In this document: positions 3,169 through 23,841 of the stretch, piece by piece
Layout: each line of letters begins with the position of its first letter
How positions within the stretch are numbered: position 1 is the stretch's first letter
Virus record (IMG/VR): IMGVR_UViG_3300042367_000228
Span: 1-64,000 of that record
Length of the DNA stretch: 64,000 nucleotides
Strand: one strand, 5' to 3'
Notes under the pieces: model-generated
What the model saw: only the letters and a program-made list of their open reading frames with translations
What the model was told of the DNA's origin: nothing
Databases searched by the model: none
Translations under genes and position numbers: made by a program

Positions 3169-3203
3169 TGTAAATCCTTTAAATATAATTTACAATATTT
3201 ATG

Positions 3204-13402: not shown

Positions 13403-13638
13403 TAAAACTCCAATTCTGAATAATCGTCATCATCTTCGTCGCTATTATCTTCTAAGTAGTATGTAATAGCTTGATCTAATACAGGATCAATACCAATAGC
13501 ACCTTGAAAGGTACGATCAGTAGCACCAAAGTCTGCTAACAATTCAATAAATCTCTCAGCAGCAATTTCTGCTTGTTTCTTATCAATATAATCTGCAAAC
13601 AACAACCATACATCAGCAATTTGTGTTTCATTCAACAT
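13402..13638 (-). CDS. Small acidic hypothetical protein
   Basis: ATG 13638 (MLNETQ) overlapping the uvsX end; acidic tail. Confidence 0.65.
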   Translation of the reverse strand: MLNETQIADVWLLFADYIDKKQAEIAAERFIELLADFGATDRTFQGAIGIDPVLDQAITYYLEDNSDEDDDDYSELEF

Positions 13639-14716
13639 TATTATCGTCCTCCATGACGTAATCATCTTCAATGATATCTTCAATGTCATCAAATACCACT
13701 GGTACATCAGTAAACTCGTTCATTGCTCTTAACAACGAATCATTAGTATTACTTTCCCATTCCTTACGGTACAATTTAATTTCAGTACCATCAGTTGCCA
13801 CATATTTAAGTCTATTTCCATCTTTTTTCAAGATATTCTTTTTCTCAAATAAATCAACTAAACCACTAAATGGGTTCATACCTGTAGTATATGGAATTTT
13901 AATTTGTAATGACTCAAATGGTTTAGCATAACGTGTTTTCATAATTTTACATGAGGCACGAATACCGTTAACTTCGCTAACTTTATTACCATCTTCGTCT
14001 TCTTTCAATTTAAGTTTTTTCATTGCTACTACAATACTAGATGCATAGATAAAACCTTGACCGCCTGAAATCTTATCGTCTGGATCAAACATATCTTGTG
14101 ATGCATAACTATGGTTAGTACATACTAAACCTACATTGTGACTACCGAACATATTAACACAGTTACGAACGAGTGCTGTAAGTGCTTTAGGTTTACGACC
14201 CATATCACCTTTTAAATCACCTGCTTCGAATTGATTAATATCAGTCGGAGTTAATAACATACCTAATGAATCTACTACAAACAAGACTTTCGGTTTGTCT
14301 TCCATAGCTTTGTATTCTTTCATAAACTCACTTATAGTTTTAGCTACGTCATCAATCATAGCCATGTTAAGTTTAAGAAGTTTTTCTTCACTTGTATCTA
14401 CACCTAGTGCGTGTAGCCAAGCTTCGTCTAGTGCGTTTTCAGAATCAATCAATACTACATAAATTTCTTGTTCTTGAGCGTGTTTAATGATATTACCTGA
14501 GCAGATGTAACTTTTACCTGCACCTGATTCGCCTGCAAACACAGTTACTTTGCCTAATGGAATACCTTTGTTGAAATCTGAACTAATAAGATAGTTCAAT
14601 GCGAAATTGCCAGTACTTACCCAATCTGTAGGATCATTAAAGCCTACACCTAAGCCGTCAATGCTTTTTGTTAGAGTTTTTCGAAATTTTGTTAAATCAA
14701 AGGGACGAGTAGCCAT
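13628..14716 (-). CDS. uvsX: RecA-like recombinase UvsX
   Basis: [10 protein letters not shown] Walker A, IDSENA, VVDSLG, KTRYAKP; own GGAG SD. Confidence 0.95.
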
Positions 14717-15461
14717 TAGTTATCTCCGTGTGTAGTTTTCTATTTTCTTTTTTGTTATGTTTGCCAAACCGATCTTTACGTTCTTCTGCTGTCATTTTAG
14801 ATATTTGTTCTTTCTTTATATTACTCATTTTTTTACATATTTCTGCATTATGAGTATACTCTAATTTTGCTTGAGATTCTCTCATTTTTCGTTTAGTTTC
14901 ATCAGTATGCTTCATACCAATATGTCCATTAGATTTACCTTTTTTTGCTAAAGAAATTGCCAATTTTCTCTCTTCAGACATAGGACCTCTAAGTTTTCCA
15001 CTCAATGATGCTTTTATTTTTTGACGCTGTTCGTTAGTAAATCCTCGGCGTTTAGCAGATGCACTCATTTTCTTAATAGTTTCCACTGAATGACGCTTAT
15101 TGAGCATTCCGGTGATACCTTGTTTAATATTCTCTCTCATTTTTTTTCGAGTTAATGGTCCTGGATTTATTAATCCATCGCCTCCATCTGTTAAATTGTG
15201 TAATATACCGGTACCTATATCTTTTCTACCATAAAAAGATATTAAATCTATTTCTAATGAAATTGCTGCTGACTCAAATAAATTTTCTTTTATGAATTTA
15301 ATTTTTGATTTATCTTTTGGAACGCTGATTCTACCATGCGTCTCAAAAGCTCGATTTTTTTTACCTTTACCGATATAATACGGTGTATTATCAGATTTTC
15401 TTAAATAACTGTAAACATAAAAAATAGGGGTATGATTATTATCAAAGGGTTTTGTTGCCAT
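14697..15461 (-). mobile_element. Free-standing GIY-YIG homing endonuclease with NUMOD3-like repeats
   Basis: FYVYSYLR...PYYIGKG; [10 protein letters not shown]; repeated [19 protein letters not shown]; starts MATKPFD. Confidence 0.9.
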
Positions 15462-15480
15462 GAATATACTCCAAACAATG

Positions 15481-15508
15481 TAACGTAGCAAGACCCCTTG
15501 CTACGTTA
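15481..15508 (-). terminator. 12-bp stem-loop between ssb and the endonuclease
   Basis: TAACGTAGCAAG-ACCC-CTTGCTACGTTA. Confidence 0.6.
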
Positions 15509-15520
15509 ATCTTACACCTA

Positions 15521-16531
15521 TTAACCGCGGTTACGAATTCTTGCTAAAATATCATTAGCACGAGAATCGCTTGATGCCGCAGGCGCTGTGTCAACAGCAG
15601 TTGGTGGAGTATATGCATTAACAGTTTCAGCTGGCTCATCCCAAGGTAATTCTTCTTCGACTTTGTGTACTACAGGAGCTACGGGTGCAACAACTGGTGC
15701 TACTGTAGCAGTATGCGTAGGAGCTGCATTTTCGTCAAACTGTACACCATATGGTCTAAAGTATTTGCCCCAACGTTCGATGTCATATGCTTCACCATTT
15801 ACTGATGCTTCAAACATTTCCATCATAACTTTAAGTTCAACGTCGTTTGGTTTTTTAGGTAAGTAGTCTGATAAGTTTGGTAATCCAAATTTATCAATTG
15901 CTGCATTTTCAGCATCGCTTAATGGACGTGTGTTACGTTTCCAAGTTGATGTTGAATAATCAGCAAAGCCGCCTTTGCTACCGACACGTAATGTAAAGTC
16001 GAAACCATTTACATAGTCTGTAGGTAATTCTGTATATTCTTCGTCAGTTAATGCTGCGTGAATTAATTTGTTAATTTGTGGTCCGATAATAAATCTACGG
16101 ATTGAATTTTCAGGTGGTTCTTTTTCGTCTAAACCGTCTTTAGATACAAAGCCATGATAAATGAAGCTACGTTTTTTCCAGTATTTACGACCCATGTCTT
16201 CTAATGAAGGATCTTTAAACCAGGGACGCACTTCTGAAAGAATCGGACATACTGAACCGTCGTTATACATTTCAACGCATGGTACATTTACTGTTACTGC
16301 TTTATTATCTGTTTGACCTTTAATACCTGCAAAAGGTAATTTGATTACGTTGCGTTCAACCCAGAAAAAAGTGTTATCTGGATTACCGTCTGGTAGGAAT
16401 CTAAAAGTTGCTTCGCCGCCTGATTTAATAGTCCAGAAAGGATAAATTGATTTATCGCCGCCTGTGTTACTATCTGTTGTACGTGTTTCTGCCGCTTTTA
16501 ATTTTGCTCTGATTTCTGCTAGTGTTGCCAT
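15521..16531 (-). CDS. gp32: Single-stranded DNA-binding protein (T4 gp32-like)
   Basis: FRFLPD, PCVEM...CPI, GRKYWKKRS motifs; acidic flexible C-terminal region. Confidence 0.9.
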   Translation of the reverse strand: MATLAEIRAKLKAAETRTTDSNTGGDKSIYPFWTIKSGGEATFRFLPDGNPDNTFFWVERNVIKLPFAGIKGQTDNKAVTVNVPCVEMYNDGSVCPILSEVRPWFKDPSLEDMGRKYWKKRSFIYHGFVSKDGLDEKEPPENSIRRFIIGPQINKLIHAALTDEEYTELPTDYVNGFDFTLRVGSKGGFADYSTSTWKRNTRPLSDAENAAIDKFGLPNLSDYLPKKPNDVELKVMMEMFEASVNGEAYDIERWGKYFRPYGVQFDENAAPTHTATVAPVVAPVAPVVHKVEEELPWDEPAETVNAYTPPTAVDTAPAASSDSRANDILARIRNRG

Positions 16532-17730: not shown

Positions 17731-18675
17731 TTATCCTCTTGCTAGTTGAATGATTCTAGCTAAACTGTCGCCTTGACTAAATGTTACATGTTCTGCAATC
17801 GGATCTGCATGATCAAAATCTCCTTGCGTATTATCGAATGGTTCAGACGGAGCAATTGACTGATCCATGTCTGCTTTTAATTCATCATAACCTGTAATTC
17901 TATCTTGGGTATTAGCTGATTGATTTTCCCAATCAATTGCTTGTTGTGTTTTAGGTCCTAAGATACCATCGGCTTTAATAGGATAGCCTTTAGCTTGTAG
18001 TTCATATTGTAACTTTTGTACAGCTGGATCAAACTTAGCTTTAGGCGTTTTTGGTTGTCCTGCAGGATGTGGTTTATCAGCATGTGGTGCAGTACTATAA
18101 GGATGTACCGCATCTAAATCTGATGGTCCACTTAAATCATCTACCGGTGGATGATCTTGTGCATAGCTAGTATCAGATGGATTAAACTGATGTGCTTGCG
18201 GAGTCGGAGCAGCATATTCATGCGGTGCATTAAGCATACTGTTTGCAATATCGGGTGCATCACCTGCGCCAACTGATGCACTTTTTGCTGAAGGCATGTC
18301 GGCTACACCACCGCCGAATCTATCAATACCCCAATCATTTGCGTCTTGTGTAAACGTTTTATTTACGTGGTTTGAGATATCATTATATGCACCTTTTCCG
18401 ACTGCGCCAATCCCGCGGGCAATTTCTTTTGCAACTTTTGGACCTTGATTAATAAGTGGATCACCTATACTATGTCCAATTCCAGATGCTAAGTCGCCAA
18501 CTGCATTATTGACATTATCTTTACCTGTATTCATGTAGTCGCTAAAGTTTTGCATTGGATGTTCTGTTGCACCGATTACATTAGGAGCATCTCCGAATGC
18601 ACCTTCAATCAATGCCATTGTTTCTCTTAGAGATTTAACGGAATCTAGAAGTACGGTTTCTGAAATTCTTTTCAT
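17731..18675 (-). CDS. Paralogous protein with peptidoglycan-binding domain
   Basis: LQYELQAKGYPIKADGILGPKTQQAI; N- and C-terminal motifs shared with 16724-17728. Confidence 0.75.
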   Translation of the reverse strand: MKRISETVLLDSVKSLRETMALIEGAFGDAPNVIGATEHPMQNFSDYMNTGKDNVNNAVGDLASGIGHSIGDPLINQGPKVAKEIARGIGAVGKGAYNDISNHVNKTFTQDANDWGIDRFGGGVADMPSAKSASVGAGDAPDIANSMLNAPHEYAAPTPQAHQFNPSDTSYAQDHPPVDDLSGPSDLDAVHPYSTAPHADKPHPAGQPKTPKAKFDPAVQKLQYELQAKGYPIKADGILGPKTQQAIDWENQSANTQDRITGYDELKADMDQSIAPSEPFDNTQGDFDHADPIAEHVTFSQGDSLARIIQLARG

Positions 18676-20962
18676 AATTATTCCTCATTGTTTTATGCAT
18701 TTTATGTTTATCGATACTATCAAATTTGCGCTTGCCAAAACCTTCCATATCGATATCATCAGTGTTTAAGTTTTGATGTTTTACGCCTGCTAATCTTAAC
18801 ACATCGTTTTGTTCACGAGCATCTTCGCTTGGATCTAACTGATCAACTTTTTGCAATACTTCTCTAACATCTTCTTCTGATGCATTACTGTATTCACCAT
18901 CTTTAAAACCTTTAATTATTTTAGTTTTAACTCTAGTGCCTCCGATTGTAAAGTTGCGTTCTTCTTTATTCCAAAATCCAGCAATTGAATTTAAGATTTG
19001 GTCTTTACCTGAAATGTTTTCGTCTGCCGGTTCGCCGCCGTCGTGTTTATCTTCCATGTCACATTCACCAAATCCTGCCTCGCACGGAGTTAATCCGCTT
19101 TCTCTAATAGCATCACGAATAGTCATACCTTCTGCAAACATAGTTTCTAATGTTGCACCGGCTGCTTTAGCTTTAATAAACTTAGCTTTGATTTTAGCTT
19201 TCTTATGATTAATACCTTCTTGCATCGGCGGAGCTGGAGGGGGTACTTCACCTACTGGCGGAGCTGGAGGAGCGCCTGCTTCTGCACCTGGTTCGCCTTC
19301 TGGAGCTGGAGGAGCGCCTGCTTCTGCACCTGGTTCGCCTTCTGGAGGTAATTCTCCTTCCGGAGGCATTCCGCCTAAGTCTGGAGGCATTCCGCCACCT
19401 AGACCACCTAAGCCGCCACCCATATCAGGTGCGCCTTCTGGTGCTGGAGGAGCTGCTGGAGGAGCTGGAGGAGCAGATCCGTCTGCTGCTGGTGCCATGT
19501 CTTGTCCGCCGATGTTACCGTCACCAAATTGTAATTGAACTGCAACACCTGGATCGGTATATGTTACATATTGTTGTATTAACGGACGAACATCTAAGTC
19601 TGGGTCGATGTCTTTAAGTGAATCTAAAAAATCAGGATCGTCAATTAAACCAGCTAAACTTTGAATAGCATTAATGCCATCCGGTCCGCCACGTAATTCT
19701 TTTTCTAAAATTTTATTTAATTTGTCAATAGCAACTTTTTGTGAATCCTTGTTCGGACTAAAGAGTTCGTCTTTATCTTCAAGCATGATACGATTAATAA
19801 ATGATTCAAATGCAAGTTCTGGATCGAAACTTTCTTTTTTATGGCTTGTATAGCCTTTGTTTTTCATTGAATGTGCTAATGCCCAAGGATTATCGATCTC
19901 CTTGTGTTTTTTCATTGCTTTAACAGTTCCTTCCCAGCCTTTAGGTGCTTTTTCATCTAAGAAGTAATCTGACGATAATTCGCAAACTGGTAATTCGCTT
20001 TCGTCTACTATGTTGTATAAGAATGGGAATACAGTTTTCATTTCTTCATTAAAAGTACGTACTGTTAACCGATCAATCCAGTCATTCATAACAGTTTCTG
20101 GAATTGCTTTTTCTTCTTTTTCAATAAACGATTCTGCAAATTGTTGATAATATGAAGGACGTTGTAAGTTGTGTATTTCTTTTTTAACTTCTTCAATGCG
20201 CTCAATTACACGATCTGTAACATTGCCCATTGCTTCTGATAATTGAGATTGACGTCCGACATATCCTTTAAACTTACGTAAACTTGCTAGTTCTTCACTA
20301 AGTTTAGTAATGTGTTTGCCAATTGCATCGTATGGGTTTCCACCATGTTTAACATGTTCTGCTAGTGCTCGAGCACCTGGTAAATGTTTATAGGGGTATT
20401 TAAATCTTTCACCGTCTGCATTTTCAACGTAAATGCATTCGATGTGCATAGTACGTCCTGCAGCTAGTTCAGGGTTAATAGGCTGGTTATGTTTAACTAT
20501 TAACCGAGTTTCGCCTAAATTTTGGTAACTTATTCTAGAAGTCCCAAACATTTTACTTTCCATCATTGGTAATTCCTTGGGTTTTGCTTGAAACTGATAG
20601 TCTCGCTTGTCTAAGTTGCTTTTACCGATATTTTGTACATCAAAATTTAATAAGCGAGATTTAGCAAATTGTCTAAATGATCTTATAAATTTAAATGCAT
20701 TGTGATGTGTAGCCCCGGAGTCATCGTCAACTAAGTCTCCACTAACTTGTACTACAATACCATCATCTAAGTCTAGTGTAATAGCAATAGTTCCAAGTGG
20801 TTCTCCATTTTCTGTGTATTGAAACTCAAAAAATCTAGCACGAGGAATATCGACTTTCTTACTTAAGACTTCTGCATTTTCGTCTCCCATTTTAATATCT
20901 GAAAAACGTGTTTGTATTTTACCATAAAGGTCTTTAGCGATTTTGTTTAAATTATTGTCCAT
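18635..20962 (-). CDS. Large hypothetical, probably head/core protein with Pro/Gly-rich linker
   Basis: ATG 20962 just downstream of ATAAATA (20968-20974); directly after terL. Confidence 0.75.
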   Translation of the reverse strand: MDNNLNKIAKDLYGKIQTRFSDIKMGDENAEVLSKKVDIPRARFFEFQYTENGEPLGTIAITLDLDDGIVVQVSGDLVDDDSGATHHNAFKFIRSFRQFAKSRLLNFDVQNIGKSNLDKRDYQFQAKPKELPMMESKMFGTSRISYQNLGETRLIVKHNQPINPELAAGRTMHIECIYVENADGERFKYPYKHLPGARALAEHVKHGGNPYDAIGKHITKLSEELASLRKFKGYVGRQSQLSEAMGNVTDRVIERIEEVKKEIHNLQRPSYYQQFAESFIEKEEKAIPETVMNDWIDRLTVRTFNEEMKTVFPFLYNIVDESELPVCELSSDYFLDEKAPKGWEGTVKAMKKHKEIDNPWALAHSMKNKGYTSHKKESFDPELAFESFINRIMLEDKDELFSPNKDSQKVAIDKLNKILEKELRGGPDGINAIQSLAGLIDDPDFLDSLKDIDPDLDVRPLIQQYVTYTDPGVAVQLQFGDGNIGGQDMAPAADGSAPPAPPAAPPAPEGAPDMGGGLGGLGGGMPPDLGGMPPEGELPPEGEPGAEAGAPPAPEGEPGAEAGAPPAPPVGEVPPPAPPMQEGINHKKAKIKAKFIKAKAAGATLETMFAEGMTIRDAIRESGLTPCEAGFGECDMEDKHDGGEPADENISGKDQILNSIAGFWNKEERNFTIGGTRVKTKIIKGFKDGEYSNASEEDVREVLQKVDQLDPSEDAREQNDVLRLAGVKHQNLNTDDIDMEGFGKRKFDSIDKHKMHKTMRNNYEKNFRNRTSRFR
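19260..19343. repeat. Exact 42-bp in-frame tandem duplication (EGEPGAEAGAPPAP x2)
   Basis: Identical 42-mers at 19260-19301 and 19302-19343. Confidence 0.9.
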
Positions 20963-20973
20963 GTTTATATTTA

Positions 20974-22083
20974 TCACATATTAGAGGAAACAAATATTGG
21001 TAGAGGTGCTTCCCAGTCCTCAATTCTTTCTTCAATTCGCATTCTTTCAAATACCATAGGATCCCATTCTGCTAGTATATCAATCATTCTTACTACTAGT
21101 AATAGTGCTGCTACTAAGTCATCATGTTGCCCCGGTTTACCTTTAAAACTAATACCATGCGCAATAAAAGATTTCAATTCAGTAATTAATGGTTTACTGT
21201 TGATAGTCATTTTATCTTCTTCTACAAAATATTTTAATTTTGAACACGCTGCTATTTTATTATTAAAGGTAGTATTAAATCCTTTGCGGAATTTACGAAC
21301 ATGCCCTTTTCTGCCAGGTTCACTCACAAACAACCCTGGAAATGATTCTTCTCCTAAATTTTCAACTACTACTAACGCGCTTTCGCCTACGGTATTGTTT
21401 TCTATTGACCAATATATAGAATTATATTGATCATATCCTAATTCATCTTGAATGTATAATAGAATTTCTCTAAGTAACTTTACTTGTCCTTGAATAGGTG
21501 TAATGTTATGATGCCATTCTGCTACTTGATTCATCGATGGTAATTCAAAAACTGTTATTGCTGAAAAGTCACCACCAGTTCCTAAACTAGGATCTAATGC
21601 AATCAAGTATAAATTACCAGCTGTTGGAGCCTTATACCAACGTACTTGACCCATTTTCATTATAGGTTCTTTACCGTATAATTCTACTAACTTTAAACTG
21701 CTAATAAGAGTTTCGTCGTATACTAAAAATTCGCAATTTTTGATTAGAACGTTATTTGCATAATACCTGTGATTCTGTTCAACATTAAACAGATCGTATA
21801 CTGGTTCTTCATCTAACAGCCACTTAACAGACACGACATTATCAAGTTTGCCATTAACTAAAATTTTTTGTTTAGGCAATAATAATCTACCTTCTATCGG
21901 TTTAAACCCATTAAGAAAATATTTATGATCAGGAGTGCTTTTAAGTGAATGACGTTGTGTAGTTACATGAAGTATCTTTTTAACACCTTTAACTAAGATT
22001 CCGTCAAACTTGCTCCAGCCGGTGTCAGTTAGCACCGTTAATCCTAACTTATTTTTTATTAATTCTTCCGCGTGTAAATCCAT
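20974..22083 (-). CDS. terL: Terminase large subunit, C-terminal nuclease half, preceded by split-intein C fragment
   Basis: After ...VLIKN comes CEFLVYDETLI; RNase H-like LIALDPSLGTGGDFS and HDDLVAA; start at ATG 22083 or TTG 22086. Confidence 0.9.
   Translation of the reverse strand: MDLHAEELIKNKLGLTVLTDTGWSKFDGILVKGVKKILHVTTQRHSLKSTPDHKYFLNGFKPIEGRLLLPKQKILVNGKLDNVVSVKWLLDEEPVYDLFNVEQNHRYYANNVLIKNCEFLVYDETLISSLKLVELYGKEPIMKMGQVRWYKAPTAGNLYLIALDPSLGTGGDFSAITVFELPSMNQVAEWHHNITPIQGQVKLLREILLYIQDELGYDQYNSIYWSIENNTVGESALVVVENLGEESFPGLFVSEPGRKGHVRKFRKGFNTTFNNKIAACSKLKYFVEEDKMTINSKPLITELKSFIAHGISFKGKPGQHDDLVAALLLVVRMIDILAEWDPMVFERMRIEERIEDWEAPLPIFVSSNM
21736..22083 (-). mobile_element. Split intein, C fragment (~116 aa)
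   Basis: TPDH (block B), PVYDLFNVEQNHRYYANNVLIKN (blocks F/G), +1 Cys. Confidence 0.88.
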
Positions 22084-22828
22084 CAAGTTCTGTTCCTTCT
22101 TTAAATTGTTTGTTAATTACTCCATTATTATACCAACACATGCCTCTCTTTGATATTTGTAATCTAGGAAGTCTTCCCTTAACAAATCCGTCAGGGCATA
22201 TATCTTTATAGGTCTCAATAACTCCATTATTAAACCATTGTTTGTCTTTTGCTGATCCAGGTTTTCCTTTTTTGGAGTCACTTATTTTTTTTGCTCTTAT
22301 AGGACATTTGTTAAACTCATAATAACCTGGTTGGCTTCTAACTAACAGTTGAGTTTCTCTTTCAGATTCAGACCATTTAGTACCTAATGTACGTCCACCA
22401 ATTCCTGGACGAGCGATACCTTTATTATATGGAATAGTTCCTTTTCTCTGAATACTCATTAATTGTTTGGTTTCTTCAGTATGTTTAAATCCAGTACACC
22501 CATCTCCGCCTAGTGTTTTATTTGTTAACGGGCCGGCATGATCAATTAATCGGCCGTACTGGTTAATCAGATCAATTTCAAGAGCCTTTGCTGCAGCATC
22601 TGTTAACTCAGTTTGATACATTTCTATAACCGGAGTTAGATTTTGCGCGACTAATCTAGAAATTACCGCAACTTTTAAATGATTACACGTAGTTTCTGCA
22701 GTTTCTGATAAATGATCTTTATATCGCCTACCGTGGCCCTTCCCAATATAAAACGGTTGATTTGCTAAAATACTCATATAACTTACTGTGATGTTAATTG
22801 GGGTTTTATAAATATATACATAATACAT
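22049..22828 (-). mobile_element. Free-standing GIY-YIG homing endonuclease between the terL halves
   Basis: YYVYIY...PFYIGKG, NKTLGGDG, HTEETKQLMS, two W(F/Y)NNG..GF.(K/R)GR repeats; ATAAATA at 22834-22840. Confidence 0.9.
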
Positions 22829-22854
22829 GCTAGTATTTATCATTTCGTCATATA

Positions 22855-23781
22855 CTATGAACTTAATAATCGCATAATATCGCCCATTGTTAGTTTTTCA
22901 ATTTTTCCAGATGGCCATTTAACAGTTACAACTGAATCATGCACAATACAACCGTATTCACGTCTAAACTTTTCTTCACCTATACGACCGAGCTCTTCTT
23001 GTTTCCATTCTTCATCTCGATCTGGATGATCCCACCAGTCAGACCGGAACCCAGAAAATCCATTAATTCCGATCTTGTTTGGTTTTTCATTCCCAAACTC
23101 ATCAAAAAACTGTTGGCTTTCCTTCCATATAGTAGCAAATTGATCTTCGTCACTGTTTGGTGTAGAAGTAATAATACAACGTCCACCAGTTGCTAGTGTA
23201 GGTGATATAGAAGTCCAAAACTCTTCAGCAATGTTAGGTTGTAGGAAAGCAAACTCATCGCAATATAATAACGAAATACTCATACCCCGTCCTGTTGTGC
23301 CAGTAGTAGTTTGACTTACAATACGTGATCCATTATCAAATTCCATAGACCCTTTATTGTAACTTACTACACCTGCACGTAAGAAGTCTGGACATAGTTC
23401 GTATCCATAACGTATACGTTGCATAATCTCTTGAGCACCTGTGTACTTGTGCGCTGCGATTAAAATAGTTTGATCCGGGTGAAACATTGCATACCATAAT
23501 AAGTATGCAGATGCACATGTTGTTTTACCACTTTGACGCGGTAACATATTAATATTAAAACGATGAGCATGATAACAATTTAATAAGTTAACTTGATAAT
23601 CAAATGGTTGAAATAATAATTTACCTTTTACTGAATGTTGGATATGAAAGAAGTTTCTTGAAAAATGTAAAAATCCGTCAGCCGGATCCGAACACATTAA
23701 TATATCATTAATCTGTTGTTCGTCAAATTTTTCAGTCTTGTGTGCTTTTTTTGTAAGGACACCGTCTAGCGATTTACCCAT
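22855..23781 (-). CDS. terL: Terminase large subunit, N-terminal ATPase half, ending in split-intein N fragment
   Basis: PRQSGKTT Walker A, YCDEFAF Walker B, STPN; ends FRREYG-CIVHDSVVTVK...; ATG 23781 follows GTAAATA (23807-23813). Confidence 0.92.
   Translation of the reverse strand: MGKSLDGVLTKKAHKTEKFDEQQINDILMCSDPADGFLHFSRNFFHIQHSVKGKLLFQPFDYQVNLLNCYHAHRFNINMLPRQSGKTTCASAYLLWYAMFHPDQTILIAAHKYTGAQEIMQRIRYGYELCPDFLRAGVVSYNKGSMEFDNGSRIVSQTTTGTTGRGMSISLLYCDEFAFLQPNIAEEFWTSISPTLATGGRCIITSTPNSDEDQFATIWKESQQFFDEFGNEKPNKIGINGFSGFRSDWWDHPDRDEEWKQEELGRIGEEKFRREYGCIVHDSVVTVKWPSGKIEKLTMGDIMRLLSS
22858..22950 (-). mobile_element. Split intein, N fragment (31 aa)
   Basis: CIVHDSVVTVKWPSGKIEKLTMGDIMRLLSS: block A-like, Cys1 at the conserved EY(E/G)|CEF terminase site. 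Confidence 0.82.
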
Positions 23782-23813
23782 ATATAATCCTTTTTTTTGT
23801 ATTATGTATTTAC

Positions 23814-23841
23814 AAAAAAAAGCGGACATAATGTCCGCTTT
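23814..23841 (-). terminator. Intrinsic terminator
   Basis: AAAGCGGACAT-T-ATGTCCGCTTT followed by a T-tract on the minus strand. Confidence 0.8.

Follow-up and report, generated by a model that had tools for sequence, protein, structure and literature searches.

Can a terminase whose gene is broken into two reading frames still be made as a single protein, and what broke the gene? This question is raised by terL in a 64,000-nucleotide (nt) stretch of DNA, positions 1 to 64,000 of IMG/VR virus record IMGVR_UViG_3300042367_000228 (hereafter, the window). Its source is an uncultivated freshwater jumbo phage, a relative of PA5oct, Atu_ph07 and the Rak2-like phages, for which the INPHARED phage collection contains no near match. 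Three successive minus-strand open reading frames (ORFs) fill positions 20974–23829 and encode, in order, the ATPase half of TerL (terL-N), a free-standing endonuclease and the nuclease half of TerL (terL-C). We assign a probability of about 0.82 to the reading that the two halves carry complementary pieces of an atypically split intein, IntN and IntC, which would join them by protein trans-splicing, and that this intein was invaded by a homing endonuclease gene.

Anatomy and exact insertion of the broken terL locus

A first-pass annotation of the window had described a fractured terL with intein pieces at 20974–23781, and all of its statements about the sequence were verified. The terL-N ORF is open over 22855–23829; because its first ATG (23829) lies in the terminator-like hairpin of the upstream gene (23819–23841, minus strand), and because alignments with relatives begin only at about residue 17, the start is placed at ATG 23781, so that the end coordinate of that annotation is likely the true terL-N start. 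From there, 277 extein residues (22951–23781) matching Pfam Terminase_6N (9.8e-19; 68.3 bits) and PHROG 36964 (4.9e-70) run to ...GEEKFRREYG and are followed, as described, by a 31-amino acid (aa) IntN (22858–22950; CIVHD...LLSS), whose Cys1 codon occupies 22950–22948, and by a TAG stop codon (22855–22857). The endonuclease gene (22049–22828; 259 aa) follows on the same strand, and its stop overlaps the start of IntC by 35 nt. IntC comprises 116 aa from ATG 22083 (21736–22083), and its blocks B, F and G read TPDH, VYDL...NHRYYAN and VLIKN, respectively. It ends in ...NHRYYANNVLIKN, with the Lys-Asn pair that had been reported, and leads into CEFLVYDE..., the beginning of a 253-aa C-extein (20977–21735; stop codon 20974–20976) that starts with Cys+1-Glu-Phe. 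The C half matches PHROG 36964 (6.9e-53) and, at the borderline, Terminase_6C (21.7 bits against a cutoff of 22.6). The PHROG 36964 model runs on across the junction from terL-N to terL-C (positions 629 and 626).

This arrangement is real DNA and no assembly accident, because independent data agree on it: a 3,732-nt contig from an independent run covers 20900–23049 with zero differences, about 20 lake metagenome runs contain the stretch, and two IMG/VR contigs (L007 and L008) are identical over 10.3 kb. The insertion is exact and in frame relative to intein-less homologs, falling at REYG|CEF. The nearest cultured relatives, PA5oct and Atu_ph07, have uninterrupted TerL sequence across the site (FRREHE|VEF and FRQEHE|CEF, respectively), and at least 120 IMG/VR stretches, retrieved with a degenerate pattern for R-E-Y-G-C-E-F-L-V-Y-D-E-T, encode an unbroken REYGCEFLVYDET. 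Among the 120 N-extein relatives listed, 96 are uninterrupted at this site. The clearest counterpart, on contig L114, is an uninterrupted TerL of 530 aa, exactly 277 + 253, in which the exteins are joined at residue 277/278; identity to it is 94% over the N-extein (residues 1–277) and 92.5% over the C-extein (residues 278–530).

Evidence for a split intein and for its movement

Homology of the two pieces to inteins is detected by profiles. A profile built from 33 IntC sequences matched the solved inteins gp41-1 (3e-12), VidaL (3.7e-12), Spl DnaX (9e-11) and NrdJ-1 (6.5e-9), as well as CatC (3e-9, or 1.1e-10 when ten extein residues were added), while the sole significant Protein Data Bank (PDB) match of a profile from 26 IntN sequences was CatN (6dsl_A; 2.6e-5). 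The residues expected to carry out splicing are conserved throughout the family: Cys1 is present in 44 of 44 loci, in IntN pieces of 30–37 aa, and T50 and H53 (the TxxH of block B), D97, N116 and Cys+1 (C117) are invariant in all 33 aligned IntC sequences, even where the exteins drop to about 45% identity. The histidine of block F is kept in the window and in most family members. The penultimate residue of IntC is Lys in the window and Lys or Ser, never His, across 86 protein clusters; the first-pass annotation was thus right to report a penultimate Lys in place of His alongside the retained F-block His. In most inteins, the penultimate His helps Asn cyclization, a feature that is common and not obligatory. 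Relative to a close relative on contig L013, the ratios of nonsynonymous to synonymous divergence (dN/dS) are 0.01 for IntN, 0.043 for IntC and 0.089 for the endonuclease; both intein pieces and the endonuclease are under purifying selection.

At this very site, loci L034 and L065 have the same intein as an unbroken domain of 143 or 132 aa, from which it follows that IntN and IntC belong to a single fold. An alignment with gp41-1 had suggested that the tail of IntN and the head of IntC duplicate a strand; this idea was rejected, since the contiguous intein of L034 has both segments in series. A structural model of the complex of IntC and IntN, each with ten extein residues, reached a score of 0.79, whereas the best of three controls stood at 0.02; among solved complexes, 58 of 80 attain the score mark used, as do 2 of 110 mismatched pairs. 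The modeled interface takes in blocks B and F and Cys+1.

Evidence of mobility came from comparing the window with IMG/VR contigs of other samples (L003, L004, L006, L011 and L012). A block of 1,265 nt (21704–22968), consisting of IntN, the endonuclease gene, IntC and 18 and 32 nt of adjoining extein, is nearly identical among otherwise diverged phages: it differs at 2 positions from L004 (99.8% identity) and at 6–8 from L011 and L012, whereas in the adjoining terL sequence 32 of about 295 nt on one side and 54 of about 319 nt on the other are mismatched (83–89% identity) and the wider flanks are 70–90% identical. Likewise, synonymous divergence (dS) from L013 is about 0.7 for the element, well under the 1.8–3.3 of the exteins. 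Presence/absence polymorphism was found within a single lake DNA run. There, the occupied allele is represented by the 3,732-nt contig without differences (depth 7.9), and a 499-nt contig (depth 5.6) fits the empty allele, with the N-extein end joined to the C-extein; in it, 391 letters between, together with the shared Cys codon, amount to 394 nt of replaced C-extein. Two contigs from a metatranscriptome library also contain the empty junction (..GAA TAT GGC|TGC GAA..). Since the junction in these contigs shows synonymous changes and their flanks diverge from the window by about 7%, they represent another allele and give no evidence of RNA splicing. The near-identical block within diverged flanks, together with the co-occurring empty alleles, indicates that the element has probably spread horizontally by homing in the recent past and that it is probably still on the move among the phages of one lake.

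Taken together with the anatomy, these data suggest the following model. A T4-type terL was interrupted at the hinge between ATPase and nuclease by a class-1 mini-intein; a free-standing GIY-YIG/NUMOD3 endonuclease gene would then have split this intein at the "S2" position, behind its first helix. Two polypeptides would be made, the ATPase half with the 31-aa IntN and the 116-aa IntC with the nuclease half. IntN is predicted to dock onto the nearly complete IntC and so to complete the HINT fold, in which Cys1, the TxxH block, the terminal Asn and Cys+1 could perform trans-splicing to yield a TerL of 530 aa with the junction ...REYG-CEFL...; the tryptic junction peptide of this product would be EYGCEFLVYDETLISSLK. 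The endonuclease, putatively expressed from a conserved ATAAATA-containing element just 5' of its ATG, may cut the intein-less terL of co-infecting relatives near the insertion site, a specificity suggested by the population data, and repair would copy the entire IntN–endonuclease–IntC block into the cut alleles.

Several observations weigh against this model. The complex model was built on our own alignments and resembles the solved structure 6DSL, so that its score may show likeness and not binding; the usual penultimate His is absent; the Pfam Intein_splicing match of the single sequence lies below threshold; and contigs from the RNA library cover the exteins of relatives and leave the endonuclease/intein block uncovered. 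Trans-splicing, and with it any dependence of DNA packaging on splicing, we infer from conserved residues and homology. One could imagine that the TerL halves form a non-covalent heterodimer in which the intein pieces are mere association handles and no peptide bond is made, as in the fragmented NrdA of phage Aeh1. The missing histidine would fit this alternative, and the predicted tight docking of IntN on IntC would keep the halves together without splicing too; residues that only splicing needs are nevertheless invariant despite saturated synonymous divergence (Cys1 in 44/44, the terminal Asn and Cys+1 in 33/33, and the TxxH), and the contiguous inteins of L034 and L065, at the same site, must splice to free TerL. 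We consider a heterodimer quite improbable. It is hardly credible that the broken terL arose as an artefact or is repaired at the nucleic-acid level, be it by mis-assembly, a self-splicing intron or dependence of a defective genome on a helper: the window does come from a metagenomic assembly, and an RNA library did show an intein-less junction, but the identical arrangement recurs in independent runs and IMG/VR contigs, the split is common to 86 protein clusters and 80 loci, and the intein-less RNA-library contigs come from another allele (TAT GGC against TAC GGT in the window, besides the flank difference of about 7%). A search for a continuous or RNA-spliced terL, which the first-pass annotation had named as contrary evidence, thus turned up contigs of another allele and no matching intron model; Rfam, scanned for group I and II introns and other RNA families, gave just sub-threshold matches, located at the terminator hairpin.

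The homing component of the model faces a separate objection. The identity block proves recent recombination, whereas its catalysis by the window's own endonuclease is putative. Ordinary homologous recombination, or selection among co-occurring phages, could have produced the 1,265-nt block if the endonuclease were inactive or domesticated and no longer drove homing. In keeping with this, the endonuclease scores only 22 bits against the Pfam LEM-3_GIY-YIG model, below the cutoff of 27, and relatives that have lost or truncated the endonuclease (L020, L028/29 and L076) retain the split intein. On the other hand, the block ends 18 and 32 nt from the intein–extein junctions, as homing with short co-conversion tracts predicts; the endonuclease is under purifying selection (dN/dS 0.089); its GIY, YIG, Arg, Glu and Asn motif residues are readable; and empty target alleles occur at similar depth in the same sample. 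This alternative therefore seems unlikely to us, and we retain a split intein that spreads by homing as the preferred explanation.

The endonuclease and its upstream element

The free-standing GIY-YIG endonuclease gene that had been announced between the two terL halves, on their strand, is present. Its product combines a probable GIY-YIG head with NUMOD3 (27.1 bits; Pfam cutoff 20.4) and a C-terminal DNA-binding module, and it matches PHROG 314, "homing endonuclease", at 6.7e-11; the motif stretches YVYIY, FYIGKG, RRY, LEID and LTNK are recognizable in its sequence. HNH and GIY-YIG proteins at the terL site are related to each other from the NUMOD3 motif to the C terminus, with residues ~118–264 of the window endonuclease being 45–62% identical to the HNH forms, and thus it appears that alternative nuclease heads, GIY-YIG or HNH, are swapped on one DNA-binding module. 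A second free-standing GIY-YIG endonuclease gene lies at 14697–15491 on the minus strand of the window (PHROG 314, 1.4e-16), flanked by genes for a UvsX-like recombinase (13628–14716) and SSB (15521–16531); its product is 35% identical to the terL endonuclease over the catalytic head.

The spacer between the IntN stop codon and the endonuclease (22829–22854, minus strand) is a conserved non-coding element that could be promoter-like or operator-like. In the window, GACGAAA (22849–22843) and ATAAATA (22840–22834) are followed after 5 nt by ATG 22828, and most of 20 aligned loci keep the arrangement GACGAAA-N2-4-ATAAATA(A/T)-N4-5-ATG. TAAAT is invariant in 20 of 20 loci, with GIY-YIG and HNH heads alike, and a few loci lack the GACGAAA box. 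This conservation supports a role for the spacer as a functional cis element, possibly a late-type promoter with a nearly leaderless mRNA, or an operator. The endonuclease ORF is open from ATG 22843 (22049–22843; 264 aa); in view of the spacing of the conserved element, however, its start is likely ATG 22828 and not 22843. No conserved RNA hairpin was found upstream of the endonuclease (0 pairs), and a sigma-70 scan was uninformative (23 matches against 16.7 ± 4.1 expected).

The first-pass annotation had credited the endonuclease with its own late promoter. The conserved ATAAATA element is a candidate for it, whereas a T4-type TATAAATA on the strand of the gene is not there. The window holds no excess of this T4 late-promoter octamer (6 copies against 14.7 expected), which near the endonuclease occurs once and on the opposite strand. 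ATAAATA at 22840–22834 is a 7/8 match to ATAAATAT, an octamer that occurs in eight short intergenic spacers directly 5' of minus-strand genes (at 3195, 6438, 7429, 24997, 27443, 33158, 41257 and 48172, all on the minus strand) and is likely a phage promoter element, even though it is not enriched in the window overall (16 found against 15 expected). Another copy of ATAAATAT, at 20967–20974, spans the terL stop codon. Directly downstream of terL lies the minus-strand gene of a 780-aa virion structural protein (18635–20977) that carries a long low-complexity insert rich in Pro, Ala, Gly and Glu (..PPAPEGEPGAEAGAPPAP.., repeated). Within the spacer itself, the letters GACG..TGA..ATAC loosely resemble the empty homing site (AGACGTGAATAC), a likeness that raises the idea of a putative I-TevI-like autorepressor operator.

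Family variants, significance and comparison with known systems

The split C half belongs to a large family: 86 clusters at 90% identity, all of 352–381 aa, were found, and an exhaustive profile search returned 3,863 representatives with an E-value of at most 1e-3, of which 750 reached 1e-10 or better; many representatives start at protein residue 1–15. Automated motif classification covered the 57 complete loci among 80 IMG/VR loci. The intein is split with an HNH endonuclease in 34 of these and with a GIY-YIG endonuclease in 13; two more have no endonuclease recognized by motif (L056 and L057, GIY-YIG-like by tblastn), and two are split with a DUF7487 protein. L071 and L073, incomplete by motif, share the 1-kb non-G-like gap of L063 and L064 and may have the DUF7487 gene too. 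In four of the 57, the split is accompanied by only a remnant of the endonuclease or by nothing (L020, L028/29 and L076): the IntN ORF of L028 and L029 runs 92 aa further, into what is left of the C-terminal end of the endonuclease, and in L076 (4857–5400), which has no endonuclease, IntN and IntC are parted by a stop codon and two codons and remain in the same frame. The intein is contiguous in the remaining two (L034 and L065). None of the 120 N-half relatives listed is a Ser1 member of the kind seen in GOS-TerL.

Several relatives are broken at other terL sites. The TerL of L013 (1922–5035; also represented by clusters P0240–P0249) is in three pieces: its Walker B site (..SISLLY|C...) holds a further atypically split intein, which has its own 307-aa endonuclease and whose IntC ends in ..SHQ|CDEFAF, that is, with a terminal Gln. 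The 247-aa middle piece has this second IntC at its N end and a window-type IntN at its C end, which implies that two orthogonal trans-splicing reactions would be needed. Breaks at the position corresponding to residue 190 of the window N half also occur in L016, L020, L027–29, L052 and L065. In Campylobacter phages NCTC12673 (L001, 3492–4820) and CP30A (L002, 3992–5320), the C part of terL, an unannotated ORF in NCTC12673, opens with an IntC of about 100 aa that ends in ..FVSHN|CAFIDKW at the Walker B site and is 36% identical to the window IntC; by this reading, the N half of terL must lie elsewhere in these genomes. The annotated terL of Agrobacterium phage Atu_ph07 (L084, 395–2586) consists of two ORFs, gp110 and gp109, the latter starting with a long IntC-like stretch that ends in ..ILSHN|T and falls, by alignment, in the Walker A region; a third site in TerL would thus be host to a split intein. 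Finally, the terL of L117 (2695–4398) is unbroken at REYG|CEF, but its N terminus is an IntC-like stretch 33% identical to residues 47–116 of the window IntC and its extein alignment begins only at window residue 73, which implies a fracture at yet another upstream site.

The broadest interpretation of these data is that an actively homing composite element circulates in lake phages, that all stages of gene fracture coexist at one terL site, that a fixed DNA-binding module and control element are combined with swapped nuclease heads, and that splicing proceeds with Lys or Ser in place of the penultimate His; we hold the odds on this combined claim to be even. If correct, the family would offer a natural series on which to test how gene fracture comes about, with a cycle at a single site that would lead from the empty allele through a contiguous intein to endonuclease invasion with splitting and on to endonuclease decay. 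It would also offer a pool of new, possibly orthogonal split inteins with a short IntN, of which the three-piece TerL would provide a natural orthogonal pair; a relative with two such inteins in one protein already suggests natural orthogonality. To our knowledge, few natural split inteins have a short N piece, and such inteins are in demand for the semisynthesis and labeling of proteins. The window pair comes from a family that is large, sequence-distinct and as yet untapped, with 86 clusters and related representatives in the hundreds, and the C-terminal active-site make-up of the pair, Lys-Asn with the F-block His, is unusual.

Among known systems, the window intein is closest to the atypically split TerL inteins, which interrupt the same host protein, phage TerL. 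The first-pass annotation had placed the locus with the AceL/GOS-TerL and fractured-gene class, and this assignment is supported by the profile matches, the exact insertion, the invariant catalytic residues and the controlled complex model. The pieces of these inteins comprise 25 + 104 aa in AceL-TerL, 37 + 115 aa in GOS-TerL and 30 + 104 aa in the consensus intein Cat (PMC11766414, PMC13014065), compared with 31 + 116 aa in the window, where, as in those inteins, IntN has block A alone and blocks B, F and G lie in IntC. By size, GOS-TerL (37 and 115 aa) is nearer to the window family than AceL-TerL is. AceL-TerL, GOS-TerL and Cat are split after helix alpha1, the "S2" position (PMC13014065). 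In Cat (6DSL), the fragment ends of CatN and CatC coincide with those of the window IntN and IntC, placing the split at the same point; CatN "EFE|A..." aligns with E-x-x|Cys1 and CatC "...SHA|CE" with ...KN|CE, which is compatible with the same TerL site as far as five extein residues can show. AceL and Cat, like the window, have Cys1 and Cys+1. The differences lie in the penultimate residue, which in the window family is Lys (Ser in some relatives) instead of His, in block F, where Cat has Asn and the window His, and in the host, here a freshwater jumbo phage. The pair had also been called sequence-distinct, in agreement with a single-sequence phmmer comparison with CatC that gave an E-value of 0.45; only profiles detect the kinship. 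The description of the N fragment as very short holds in part: the 31 aa are as stated, but they are not exceptionally short beside the IntN of AceL-TerL (25 aa), VidaL (16 aa) and PolB16 (15 aa) (PMC13014065).

The inteins that gave the best IntC profile matches, gp41-1, NrdJ-1 and VidaL (PDB 6QAZ, 8UBS and 6VGV), are class-1 mini-inteins from phages or metagenomes whose host proteins differ from TerL. VidaL is atypically split like the window intein, but at S1, which gives its 16-aa IntN; gp41-1 and NrdJ-1 have the canonical split site. The endonuclease resembles I-TevI-type enzymes in its N-terminal GIY-YIG head, NUMOD3 and C-terminal binding module, and its gene stands free in a T4-like late region. 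Unlike I-TevI-type genes, it lies inside the intein coding sequence and not in an intron or intergenic spacer, and most of its relatives carry an HNH head on the same binding module.

The layout as a whole, with an N-extein–IntN gene, a free-standing GIY-YIG or other endonuclease gene and an IntC–C-extein gene on one strand, is that of the "fractured genes" of Dassa et al. (2009), which include a terminase locus from a lake with an unusual break point and a long (122-aa) IntC (PMC2677866). The window family goes beyond those loci in that every stage of the gene-breaking model put forward by Dassa et al. is found at one orthologous site and in one phage lineage, with empty, contiguous, endonuclease-less and remnant-bearing alleles and splits with three different endonucleases, along with direct population evidence of recent transfer. 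We conclude from these sequence comparisons that the window intein is most plausibly a divergent, allelic relative of the AceL/GOS-TerL class within a classical fractured gene. The concept was already known and is unchanged; an unusually complete natural data set now fills it in, and its added value lies in the size and variety of the family, the presence of all evolutionary stages at one site, the signature of homing and the Lys-Asn variant of the active site.

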